This document shows, in pieces, positions 40,024 to 42,458 of a stretch of DNA of 64,000 nt (within the stretch, counting starts at the first letter, position 1; every line of letters starts with the position of its first letter). The notes beneath the pieces are model-generated. The model was not told where the DNA came from, searched no databases, and was given only the letters and a program-made list of their open reading frames with translations. The stretch lies in the sequence record ON287370.1. The stretch is one strand, 5' to 3'. The translations under genes and the position numbers were made by a program.

Positions 40024-40152
40024 ATGTATTTTAGTGGTGGCTCCTGGACAGGGGCTTTTGTAATCTTTGGATTACTTTGCGCTGTAGTTGGTTGGGGCGT
40101 TATTGAAACACTACGTTGGCTTTTCTCTTTCGTCCATATTACATTTGGTTAG
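40024..40152 (+). CDS. Small membrane protein (42 aa), not in ORF track
   Basis: AAGGAG RBS; MYFSGGSWTGAFVIFGLLCAVVGWGVIETLRWLFSFVHITFG*. Confidence 0.65.
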   Translation: MYFSGGSWTGAFVIFGLLCAVVGWGVIETLRWLFSFVHITFG

Positions 40153-40162
40153 GAATATTTAA

Positions 40163-40429
40163 ATGAAAGTTGTAATTTATGGCAAACCGAATTGCCCATG
40201 GTGTGATCGCGCCAAGAACCTGGTTAAAGATGTTGAAGGTATTGAACATGAATACATCGACATTACTCAAGTTGGGATCGATGGCCCTAAGCTTAGTGAA
40301 ATCTGCGGTGAAGAAGTTCGCACAGTTCCACAGATCCTGGTTGACGGTAAATACAATCCACATGGCTTCCAAGGTCTGATACCAGTTGTTGCTAAACACA
40401 AAGCAAGTCTTCCTCAAAAAGAAGCTTGA
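40163..40429 (+). CDS. Glutaredoxin
   Basis: YGKPNCPWC redox motif, TVPQI, 88 aa. Confidence 0.9.
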   Translation: MKVVIYGKPNCPWCDRAKNLVKDVEGIEHEYIDITQVGIDGPKLSEICGEEVRTVPQILVDGKYNPHGFQGLIPVVAKHKASLPQKEA

Positions 40430-40435
40430 TAGTGC

Positions 40436-40512
40436 GGCCCTGTAGCTCAGTTGGTTAGAGCAAGTGACTCATAATCGCCTGGTCACAGGTTCAAGTCCTG
40501 TCAGGGCCACCA
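40436..40512 (+). tRNA. tRNA-Ile2(CAT) (lysidine type)
   Basis: GGCCCTG/CAGGGCC A73 CCA; GACTCATAATCGC and overall sequence close to enterobacterial tRNA-Ile2, not fMet. Confidence 0.88.
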
Positions 40513-40520
40513 TGTAGTAA

Positions 40521-40898
40521 CCCAGTTAAGTTGGGAAGTGTAAGTCTGGTCCAATGAGCCGATTGATTCGGGGTTGGAAGGGGTTTGCCAGTCAACGGTA
40601 TTGGGATGTAAGACCTCTGTAAGTTCGGCCCTACTGGGCAGACAAGTACAGAGGCAATACCTGGCTAGTATGCCAGGTTTAAATCCAAGAGTGAACGGCG
40701 GCGAGAGTCCGCTATTGTAAATAGCTCTTGGTGGGTGTTGTCCTGGTTAAGCCTCGGCGACATAGCAGCGCGTTTGATAGAATGCCCAGTAGCATAAGCT
40801 GAATGCACTTCCGATACGTGACTATTGGATTATCGATGATGGTAGAACCCGAACTCCATCCTGGGCGGTCATAAAAAACAATATCTATCTTAACTGGG
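40521..40898 (+). ncRNA. Candidate 378-nt pseudoknotted ncRNA
   Basis: CCCAGTTAAG/CTTAACTGGG perfect closing helix, GGAAGTGTA/TGCACTTCC, loop-derived CTACTGGGCA/TGCCCAGTAG 10-bp pseudoknot, several hairpins. Confidence 0.65.
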
Positions 40899-40982
40899 AA
40901 CGCTGTACCCATATGTGTCTTGGTATCGAACAAACCCTAGCTATATATGCATAAATGTGATGAGCTTGAGAGTTGATGATAC

Positions 40983-41112
40983 GGAGACACACCCATCGGT
41001 CCTTCTGAACGAAAGCATAACTTAAGGTTGAACATTGATGTTCAAATAACCTGGGAGAGTAATGAGATTACTCATGCGATATCAGAGGACCACCCTAATC
41101 CCTTTGGTGAGG
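40983..41112 (+). ncRNA. Multi-stem RNA domain 5' of the hammerhead
   Basis: GGTCC-TCTGA/TCAGA-GGACC, TTGAACA/TGTTCAA, GAGTAAT/ATTACTC, ACCCT/AGGGT. Confidence 0.55.
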
Positions 41113-41114
41113 GT

Positions 41115-41210
41115 TGTCGTACTATCTGACGAGTCTGACGACATAAAACAAGTAGACGAAACGGGTATCCAATAAGGTGTCTCCAGCACCATTGGAACCG
41201 TCATAGAACA
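41115..41210 (+). ncRNA. Type I hammerhead ribozyme, predicted cleavage GUC after 41202
   Basis: CUGACGA 41126-32; stem II GUCU/AGAC; GAAA 41158-61; stem III ACGG/CCGU extended by UCCAAU/AUUGGA and GGUG/CACC; stem I CUAU/AUAG; loop II pseudoknot UGUCGU/ACGACA. Confidence 0.9.
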
Positions 41211-41452
41211 GCTGTGCCCTAACCGTGAGCAGCCACCCGATGTTCAAGGGTGAGACAACAGCGCTTTAACTGGAAGGTAACTATATGGCATTATAGCGTA
41301 CCAAGCCAGACGCAAACGGTCCGTCTCCATGCCAGGGGAAAGTTGTTGACATCAACCGTAGACAGCCGTCTGAGTGATTGTAATATGAAGGGATTTGCAA
41401 CCCTGAGATTATTGATTGCTCTTTCGAGTGTCCATGTAACTAAGCATTTACT

Positions 41453-41482
41453 CCCTACCCCTTCCGAAAGGTTGGGGTAGGG
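41453..41482 (+). terminator. Terminator closing the ncRNA locus
   Basis: CCCTACCCC/GGGGTAGGG stem followed by U-rich tract. Confidence 0.8.
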
Positions 41483-41612
41483 GTTTATGTTTGTCTTTTA
41501 GTTTTAAATCATATGACGTCTTCTCTCTATTAACAAACCTAGGATGGTTGGATAGTGAGATCATTGCCTTTCTATAAAGGTCTATTTCGAAATAGTATTT
41601 AGGAGGGTTCAA

Positions 41613-42458
41613 GTGAATCCAGTTGATTTTAGTGTTGAGTATGTGATCAATGGTCCTACCGACATCTCTGAATATTTATTGAAGCTAGCCTTCCATAATC
41701 CAAATAACGGTTATGGAAGTATCTGGGCTCCAGTGAATGACGAGTTTACTGTAGAACAAGGTATTCGTGAAAAGGTCATCATGAAAATGGTTGGTCCTTT
41801 ACTTAATGTGGCTGGCGGTACTACGGAGATCATCGATCTTAGCGCAGCACATATTGAAAACCTTTCCGGTGGTATCATCGCAGTTAACGTTCCTGACTTC
41901 ATGACAGGTGGTCGTCGTATTCTTTCTGTCTTGGAAGTTTACCCAGGTAACATCAACCGAGCTATCAACAATGGTTATAACTTTAATAACTATGCAGCTT
42001 GTGGTTCTGGTATGATGAACAATAGTCTTAACCGCTTAATTAACGGTTTGGACGATGGTCAGGTTCAACGTTCCTTTACTAGCTTCACCATGACAGGTAA
42101 TAACTCCTTTATTATCCGTGACGCTGGTTCTGCGATGTTTAATATGATCGCTAAAGTTATTCTGTCTTATGACGAACACTTCAGCGTTATACCTGCAAGA
42201 ATGTATGACAAGTTTGCCGAGCTAGTAGAACTTGGTGTTAAAGCTTATATCTATAAGACATGTCGTCGTGGTATGCAAGAAGCCGTTTCACGTTTCGGTG
42301 TAACTGTTGAAGATGTTCAGGATGATATCCAAGGTTATGCTGATGCTCACCGTGAGTTCAAAGATCTGTATAATAATGAGATTAAGAAATATCTTGCTTA
42401 TGCTGATCCGAAAGGTAAGTCTGATGCAATTAAGATGACAGTCCCAAGGAAACGTTAA
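41613..42458 (+). CDS. Conserved phiKZ-like virion structural protein
   Basis: 281 aa, GTG start with AGGAGG; position upstream of terminase. Confidence 0.6.
   Translation: MNPVDFSVEYVINGPTDISEYLLKLAFHNPNNGYGSIWAPVNDEFTVEQGIREKVIMKMVGPLLNVAGGTTEIIDLSAAHIENLSGGIIAVNVPDFMTGGRRILSVLEVYPGNINRAINNGYNFNNYAACGSGMMNNSLNRLINGLDDGQVQRSFTSFTMTGNNSFIIRDAGSAMFNMIAKVILSYDEHFSVIPARMYDKFAELVELGVKAYIYKTCRRGMQEAVSRFGVTVEDVQDDIQGYADAHREFKDLYNNEIKKYLAYADPKGKSDAIKMTVPRKR

Follow-up and report, generated by a model that had tools for sequence, protein, structure and literature searches.

A putative 3'-terminal type I hammerhead ribozyme in a large conserved structured RNA beside jumbo-phage tRNA genes

Pseudoknot-stabilised hammerhead ribozymes of all three types have been found, many of them in phages, and they cleave fast at physiological Mg2+ in a pseudoknot-dependent manner (PMC3088659). 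Phage hammerheads were described in 2011, together with pseudoknot contacts for all three topologies (Perreault et al., PMC3088659). A second group of small self-cleaving RNAs, the theta (minimal HDV-like) ribozymes, lies directly downstream of phage tRNAs and processes tRNA 3' trailers (PMC10879173). Phages also encode large structured RNAs such as ROOL and GOLLD (PMC5737381; bioRxiv 10.1101/2024.12.08.627333). Here we describe a phage locus and compare it with these systems.

The window that we analysed, 64,000 nucleotides long, matches positions 1-64000 of Serratia phage vB_SmaM-Sureiya (ON287370.1) at 100% identity (blastn). Sureiya is a jumbo phage with a 256-kb genome, classified in GenBank as Petsuvirus. 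Pseudomonas phage OBP is among the chimallin-encoding phages (PMC10299810), and since Sureiya shares the Petsuvirus classification with OBP, we infer that Sureiya-type phages belong to the chimallin-encoding, nucleus-forming group. The four tRNA genes (Asn, Ser, Arg, Met) and the flanking protein genes occupy the plus strand, which is also the strand of the hammerhead. The tRNA-Met gene is the final one of the tRNA/glutaredoxin cluster, and a 42-codon ORF and the glutaredoxin gene (40024-40429) both lie between tRNA-Arg and tRNA-Met. Structured RNA starts directly 3' of tRNA-Met. The interval 40513-41612 contains neither an annotated feature in GenBank nor an ORF of at least 80 aa, in keeping with the original prediction, made from the sequence of the window, of a hammerhead in non-coding DNA behind the tRNA cluster. 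Virion structural genes start at 41613 and have the same orientation as the hammerhead in all lineages. In the relatives, the homologous interval is flanked by the tRNA/glutaredoxin cluster and the same virion structural gene pair, and the order tRNA, glutaredoxin/thioredoxin, large RNA is maintained throughout the clade. Around the ribozyme, the Sureiya locus is laid out as follows.

40436-40512, plus strand: tRNA-Met(CAT), called by ARAGORN and by the Rfam tRNA model (67.3 bits) and annotated in GenBank
40513-41095, plus strand: 5' structured non-coding RNA domain of ~580 nt, ORF-free, unannotated and conserved in at least 11 phage lineages
41203-41451, plus strand: 3' structured RNA module of ~250 nt, from the projected minimum free energy (MFE) structure on alignment A6
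41452-41492, plus strand: intrinsic-terminator-like hairpin (UCCCUACCCC...GGGGUAGGGG) with a U-rich tail, containing a covarying 10-bp helix (41452-61/41474-83)

The original prediction had placed a complete type I hammerhead at 41115-41210 on the plus strand, and when we re-read the sequence every position was correct. Read 5' to 3', the 5' strand of stem I is followed by the core, the hairpin of stem II, GAAA, the hairpin of stem III, GUC and the 3' strand of stem I. Stem I is open, stems II and III are closed by loops, and the 5' and 3' ends exit through stem I, as in type I topology. The A15.1-U16.1 pair corresponds to A41161-U41201 and H17 to C41202, both invariant in all homologues. The proposed tertiary contact, in which a perfect 6-bp pseudoknot (41115-20/41138-43) links the sides of stems I and II, can form as described, and the nested hairpin reported in stem III is present and consists of two helices. 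The elements of the ribozyme are listed below.

41100-41113, plus strand: hairpin P0 (CCCUU/GAGGG), directly 5' of the ribozyme, in the MFE and centroid predictions
41115-41120, plus strand: 5' strand of the pseudoknot (UGUCGU), pairing with loop II (helix 24-29/48-53 of alignment A1)
41122-41125, plus strand: 5' strand of stem I (CUAU), compensatory changes at 4/4 pairs
41126-41132, plus strand: core C3-U4-G5-A6-C7-G8-A9 (CUGACGA), invariant in 12/12 sequences except N7
41133-41157, plus strand: stem II, GUCU (41133-36) with AGAC (41154-57), closed by G10.1-C11.1, 95.8% paired
41138-41153, plus strand: within loop II, the 3' strand of the pseudoknot (ACGACA, 41138-43) followed by a conserved A-rich tract (41144-53), from sequence and alignment
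41158-41161, plus strand: core G12-A13-A14 and A15.1, invariant in 12/12 sequences
41161-41201, plus strand: extended stem III, predicted by MFE, with IIIa invariant and IIIb and IIIc covarying
41161-41164 and 41198-41201, plus strand: helix IIIa (ACGG/CCGU), invariant and 100% paired
41168-41173 and 41191-41196, plus strand: helix IIIb (UCCAAU/AUUGGA), 6/6 pairs compensatory on the model-fitted alignment
41176-41179 and 41187-41190, plus strand: helix IIIc (GGUG/CACC), 4/4 pairs compensatory on the model-fitted alignment
41180-41186, plus strand: apical loop of stem III (UCUCCAG), conserved, consensus YUCCAR
41200-41202, plus strand: GUC triplet, with the invariant C17 at 41202
41202/41203, plus strand: predicted cleavage site between C17 (41202) and A1.1 (41203), from the hammerhead consensus
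41203-41206, plus strand: 3' strand of stem I (AUAG), pairing with CUAU (41122-25)

Folding of the single sequence recovered P0 and stem III in the MFE structure and missed stems I and II; where the fold is pseudoknotted and the helices are very short, this is expected. The MFE structure does show that alternative pairings compete with the hammerhead fold in Sureiya. For the 117-nt hammerhead segment the z-score is only -1.1. A stem I of 2-4 bp is short among natural hammerheads.

We assessed how often such a motif arises by chance. The bare core pattern without pairing matched 13 times against 7.7 +/- 7.5 expected, which is not rarer than chance. For this reason we used a full descriptor that requires the core, a 4-bp stem II, a 4-bp stem III including A15.1-U16.1, a non-G at position 17 and a 3-bp stem I. 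On both strands of the window it matched once, at the 41115-41210 site, and it matched in 2 of 300 dinucleotide-preserving shuffled windows (1 of 300 when a pseudoknot of at least 5 bp was also required). A relaxed descriptor matched elsewhere in the Sureiya genome, within a CDS and with weak AU stems, and we took this match as chance. The check that the original prediction had proposed, a search with type I hammerhead covariance models, would have come out negative: Hammerhead_1, Hammerhead_3, Hammerhead_II, HH9 and HH10 of Rfam gave no match at gathering thresholds in the window and 11 relatives, and no hammerhead match was obtained at E<=10 on the 1.1-kb Sureiya interval. The best Rfam score, with the 136 nt searched alone, was 14 bits for Hammerhead_3 (threshold 48.5), in a mis-registered partial alignment. 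This failure is probably due to the ~30-nt extension of stem III together with a stem I that is short and open; the core is complete.

We searched for homologues and found the hammerhead at the syntenic locus in 12 further distinct sequences and in the near-identical phage Yubaba. By blastn, the DNA of the 1.1-kb interval from tRNA-Met to the following gene is conserved in Yubaba, Klebsiella phage N1M2, Shewanella phage SXP01, Kosakonia phage Kc263, Edwardsiella phage pEt-SU, Pantoea phage Survivor and Pseudomonas phage OBP, and all seven carry the hammerhead. Scanning for the pattern brought in five more carriers of the hammerhead, four IMG/VR jumbo-phage contigs and a metagenome contig, and a covariance model of the family added Erwinia phage AH04 (93 bits). 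Within the Sureiya genome the same model found a single copy, the one in the window; the other 192 kb gave no match. A second, upstream hammerhead (CUGACGA ... GAACGAAAGC, ~40950-41015) was considered and rejected; its core is not conserved between lineages and its stem II cannot form.

Conservation was measured on a plain MAFFT alignment of 12 distinct sequences that was not fitted to any structure (A1). The positions C3, U4, G5, A6, G8, A9, G10.1/C11.1, G12, A13, A14, A15.1/U16.1 and C17 are invariant. The sole varying core position is N7, which is C, U or A, and N7 is also the only core position that the hammerhead consensus leaves free. The four core helices form standard pairs in 94.9% of cases, compared with 18-58% when their 3' partners were slid, and 9 of the 18 pairs show compensatory changes. 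The pseudoknot is 97.2% paired, with compensatory changes at 4/6 pairs (UGUCGU/ACGACA, GUUCG/CGAAC, CGUCGA/UCGACG, CAUCGC/GCGAUG and others). Stem I, which is 2-4 bp long across the family, is compensatory at all four pairs (CUAU/AUAG, CAG/CUG, CAU/AUG, CACC/GGUG), and stem II, with its invariant G10.1-C11.1, is compensatory at one. On the model-fitted alignment A3, which leans towards the structure by construction, 22 of the 31 pairs of the full structure are compensatory, including 10/10 in the stem III extension and 3/3 in P0, a hairpin found at the same place in all homologues with differing sequences. Core invariance together with covarying helices at syntenic loci indicates that the Sureiya element is a real, selected hammerhead fold, and the earlier assignment to type I holds for every defining feature that could be tested.

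The family appears essentially confined to phage contigs: of 116 pattern matches in bacterial and archaeal contigs (one genome per species), one (L126) scores with the family model, in a search that covered the retrieved loci. Neither the ribozyme nor motifs of the large RNA were found in Aeromonas phages with 65-72% protein identity in the virion gene or in phage EL (46%), and because these relatives do without them, the ribozyme and the RNA are not essential to the wider phage group. In the Aeromonas jumbo-phage relatives an unannotated gap of 0.8-1.1 kb occupies this position, with a tRNA-Leu(UAA) in it that is likewise unannotated (L029:2242-2327, L030:2044-2128) and no hammerhead or homology to the Sureiya RNA. 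Two 'hypothetical protein' ORFs have been annotated across the conserved RNA and hammerhead, N1M2_252 (L001:1492-2004, minus strand) and QYN80068.1 of Kc263 (L003:2513-2704, plus strand). Such ORFs over the homologous interval are not conserved even among close relatives and have no counterpart in Sureiya, and the two calls are probably annotation artefacts.

Wherever the ribozyme of this family occurs, the conserved 5' RNA is attached to it; what lies 3' of the ribozyme varies. The 5' RNA retains 70-90% blastn identity in distant phages and is conserved block by block across lineages. The MFE structure was computed from Sureiya only, with helices not selected for covariation, and then projected onto an alignment of 11 sequences (A5). 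Here 69.8% of cases are paired compared with ~41% for slid partners, with 175 compensatory cells compared with 67-99 and a covariation score of 0.243 compared with ~0.10. A scan for covarying column runs identified long-range helices at 40765-70/40901-06, 40733-37/40906-10 and 41002-08/41082-88, and the RNAalifold prediction is a multi-junction fold with compensatory changes at 24 of its 59 pairs. Invariant motifs within 40513-41095 are GUAAGACC, UAAAUCC, GCAUAAGCUGAAUGC, UAGAACCCGAACU and AAUAUCUAUC. A loop hexamer at 40592-40597, GUYRAC (GUCAAC, GUUGAC or GUCGAC by lineage), is self-complementary or nearly so in several phages, and we speculate that the large RNA might dimerise or form a kissing contact through it.

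The 3' module is present in Sureiya, N1M2, Kc263, OBP, AH04 and four UViGs and absent from SXP01, pEt-SU and Survivor. On an alignment of nine sequences (A6) its projected structure is 72.5% paired, compared with 42-52% when slid, and has 69 compensatory cells compared with 12-28. A hairpin just past the cleavage site (41211-15/41229-33) covaries, as does a pairing of its loop with a distal segment (41222-26/41316-20), with a switch from C-G to U-A. Invariant blocks of the module are GCCYUAACYGUGA, CAAACRGUCYG, GAAGUUGU and GUAGACAGCC. The distance from the cleavage site to the terminator is 19-23 nt in SXP01, pEt-SU and Survivor, compared with 241-324 nt in the other lineages. The terminator-like hairpin closes the tRNA/ncRNA unit and is conserved in all lineages. 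Its sequence (CCCUACCCC...GGGGUAGGGG, 41452-41500) is conserved too, and is followed by UUUAUG in most lineages and by UUUUUG in OBP. A simple terminator scanner missed the hairpin at 41452-41492, presumably owing to its inner mismatches.

We compared the flanking RNAs with known families. Rfam searches at E<=10 in Sureiya and nine relatives returned no family for either RNA. Motifs resembling CR-I to CR-V of RNase P can be picked out by eye, in order, in the 5' RNA, but no covariance model matched, and in the consensus from RNAalifold the CR-V-like UAGAACCCGAACU forms a hairpin loop. A group I intron-like reading, prompted by what we take to be a resemblance to the core of the phage T4 td intron, failed as well: Intron_gpI gave no match at E<=10 and the helices do not fit. 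Like ROOL and GOLLD (PMC5737381; bioRxiv 10.1101/2024.12.08.627333), the RNA is several hundred nucleotides long, ORF-free, phage-encoded and adjacent to tRNAs, with covarying long-range helices. Unlike them, it comes from Gram-negative jumbo phages and has a built-in hammerhead, and neither the ROOL and GOLLD models nor those of other large Rfam ncRNAs matched it at E<=10. We regard 40513-41095 as a candidate new large structured phage RNA.

The ribozyme itself resembles the pseudoknot hammerheads of bacteria and phages (PMC3088659; Rfam clan CL00010, Hammerhead_1 RF00163) in its 11 or more core nucleotides, three-stem junction and GUC triplet, in a pseudoknot of 4-6 bp between the stem I and stem II sides, and in its occurrence in phage genomes with a presumed role in cutting long phage transcripts. 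It differs from them in several respects. Stem I is open and has only 2-4 bp; the pseudoknot joins loop II to a single-stranded 5' flank, with 1-3 nt between that flank and stem I; two further helices with a conserved apical loop extend stem III by ~30 nt; the element scores below every Rfam hammerhead threshold; and it lies inside a large structured ncRNA rather than between protein genes. The likeness to theta ribozymes (PMC10879173) is a functional analogy only, that of a small self-cleaver in a phage tRNA/ncRNA region that is presumed to make RNA ends without host nucleases. Theta ribozymes are of the HDV-like class and cut at their own 5' end, whereas the Sureiya hammerhead lies ~600 nt from the nearest tRNA and is predicted to cut near its own 3' end and to remain on the upstream RNA.

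We propose, with a probability of roughly 0.8, that the motif is an active type I hammerhead, that it makes up the 3' part of a ~690-nt structured ncRNA (40513-41202), and that it acts in processing the 3' end of this RNA. Taken by itself, the statement that the Sureiya element is a functional self-cleaving hammerhead is very likely correct, and the processing role alone is fairly probable. The ~690-nt RNA would be made from the plus strand, co-transcribed with the phage tRNA/glutaredoxin cluster. As it is transcribed, the 5' flank UGUCGU would pair with loop II, and the resulting pseudoknot would keep stems I and II parallel, allowing the core to cut between C41202 and A41203. The upstream RNA would retain the ribozyme and end in a 2',3'-cyclic phosphate. 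The downstream piece would leave with a 5'-OH, as a ~250-nt structured RNA plus terminator in Sureiya and as the terminator hairpin alone in SXP01, pEt-SU and Survivor. Because stem I has only 2-4 bp, the 3' product would be expected to dissociate at once and re-ligation to be disfavoured, making the reaction practically irreversible. Cleavage in one direction would in turn make the ribozyme a protein-independent device for 3'-end maturation and for separating the two RNAs. Analogous cases are the phage tRNA ends made by theta ribozymes (PMC10879173) and the cutting of transcripts suggested for prophage hammerheads (PMC3088659). We infer that the hammerhead strand is transcribed and that cleavage actually takes place. 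The benefit might be a defined, exonuclease-resistant RNA end, or processing within the phage nucleus, from which host RNases are possibly excluded. Independence from host RNases in that compartment is a plausible advantage because the phages belong to the chimallin-encoding group, and any advantage of ribozyme-made over terminator-made ends is speculative.

A fold conserved to this degree could also be kept for its shape, as a structural or docking module or a conformational switch that hardly cleaves in vivo or does so only in certain states. The hammerhead is physically part of a larger conserved RNA, the MFE prefers competing pairings, and the stem III loop (YUCCAR) and the A-rich loop II are conserved beyond catalytic need, which suggests extra contacts. 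A purely structural element, however, would need neither a non-G at position 17 nor an open and very short stem I, and C17, G5, G8 and G12, all the chemistry nucleotides, are invariant in lineages that are ~55-67% identical overall, while the free N7 varies. The stem III loop is also without a found partner: a scan of the flanking RNA gave no consistent complementary site in the homologues other than Sureiya and N1M2, for which it had taken the wrong segment as the loop. We consider a structural role without meaningful or constant cleavage unlikely.

Cleavage might instead serve gene expression, by cutting read-through transcripts and so uncoupling the virion genes from 41613 onwards or giving their mRNA a 5'-OH. 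For phage hammerheads, a role in dividing polycistronic transcripts into pieces of gene length has been suggested (PMC3088659), and here the virion structural genes follow downstream in the same orientation in every lineage. We find this explanation hard to maintain, and rate it as quite improbable: in every lineage the conserved intrinsic-terminator hairpin separates the ribozyme from the genes, so that most transcripts should end before the virion genes; the ribozyme lies 410 nt upstream of the virion-gene start codon in Sureiya; and its conservation follows that of the 5' RNA, not that of the genes, which the Aeromonas phages and EL keep without any ribozyme. A chance match in AT-balanced non-coding DNA would fit the frequency of the bare core consensus and the lack of an Rfam call, a lack that would also fit a small mobile or circular hammerhead RNA (a retrozyme or viroid-like unit). 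Yet the full descriptor is rare in shuffles, and the genome has a single hammerhead, with no second one flanking a unit-length element and no repetition of the element. Synteny, invariance and covariation across 13 sequences also speak against both; barring alignment artefacts, covariation and synteny already refute the chance and mobile origins on the sequence evidence, and to these we assign next to no probability.

We see even odds that the hammerhead is the maturation device of an undescribed class of large structured phage RNAs (the ~690-nt RNA and, mostly, a second one of ~250 nt) of the rank of ROOL and GOLLD, with ribozyme-made ends perhaps an adaptation to RNA processing in the phage nucleus, out of reach of host RNases. 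On that reading the class would have a function of its own, catalytic, scaffolding or host-directed, and would be encoded next to the tRNAs in jumbo phages of the OBP/pEt-SU/N1M2 type (chimallin-encoding). Full-text literature searches returned nothing relevant on hammerheads in jumbo, phiKZ, Chimalliviridae or nucleus-forming phages, in agreement with the remark in the original prediction that such a role had not been described, and no ncRNA report surfaced in the genome papers of Sureiya-type phages; the searches turned up no transcriptome data for them either. The hammerhead class itself is known; the context, at the 3' end of a large conserved RNA beside jumbo-phage tRNAs, appears to be undescribed.

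The locus exposes a blind spot of annotation, in that a clear natural hammerhead is missed by current Rfam models, and its short open stem I, 5'-flank/loop II pseudoknot and extended stem III could be used to improve searches for phage ribozymes. The hammerhead also flags a deeply conserved, multi-helix and unannotated ncRNA locus of ~1 kb in phages that are under active study for their nucleus-like compartment. As the predicted ends at 41202/41203 can be mapped, the built-in ribozyme offers a precise handle on questions that the locus raises, namely how large phage ncRNAs mature, whether ribozymes replace host RNases and what the large RNA does.

The architecture recurs outside the Sureiya clade. 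Klebsiella phage Miami has a hammerhead (L034:774-874, minus strand) within a 350-nt unannotated gap, with 92-100% conservation among Miamivirus-like phages of Klebsiella, Raoultella and Stenotrophomonas. Like the Sureiya element it is of type I, its stem I is short, its loop II has an A-rich tail, and its 5' flank and loop II form a pseudoknot (CGUCG/CGACG) centred on UCG/CGA. It differs in its locus and strand context, its short stem III and the lack of an attached large RNA of the Sureiya type. Two IMG/VR contigs of 62 and 104 kb (L041, at ~289, and L048, at ~10439 in reverse-complement coordinates) also encode hammerheads, in which stem III is long and the pseudoknot is UGUCG/CGACA. These too have the type I architecture with a UCG/CGA-centred pseudoknot, A-rich loop II tail and short stem I, at another genomic locus and in another strand context and with no Sureiya-type large RNA attached; because both phage contigs are unrelated to the Sureiya clade, the architecture recurs in phages. 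A metagenome contig of 2.3 kb, JAEEGL014545267.1 (L014), has three type I hammerhead matches on the minus strand (208-432 and 1111-1211), two of them adjacent and the third ~700 nt away, which are unrelated to the Sureiya family.
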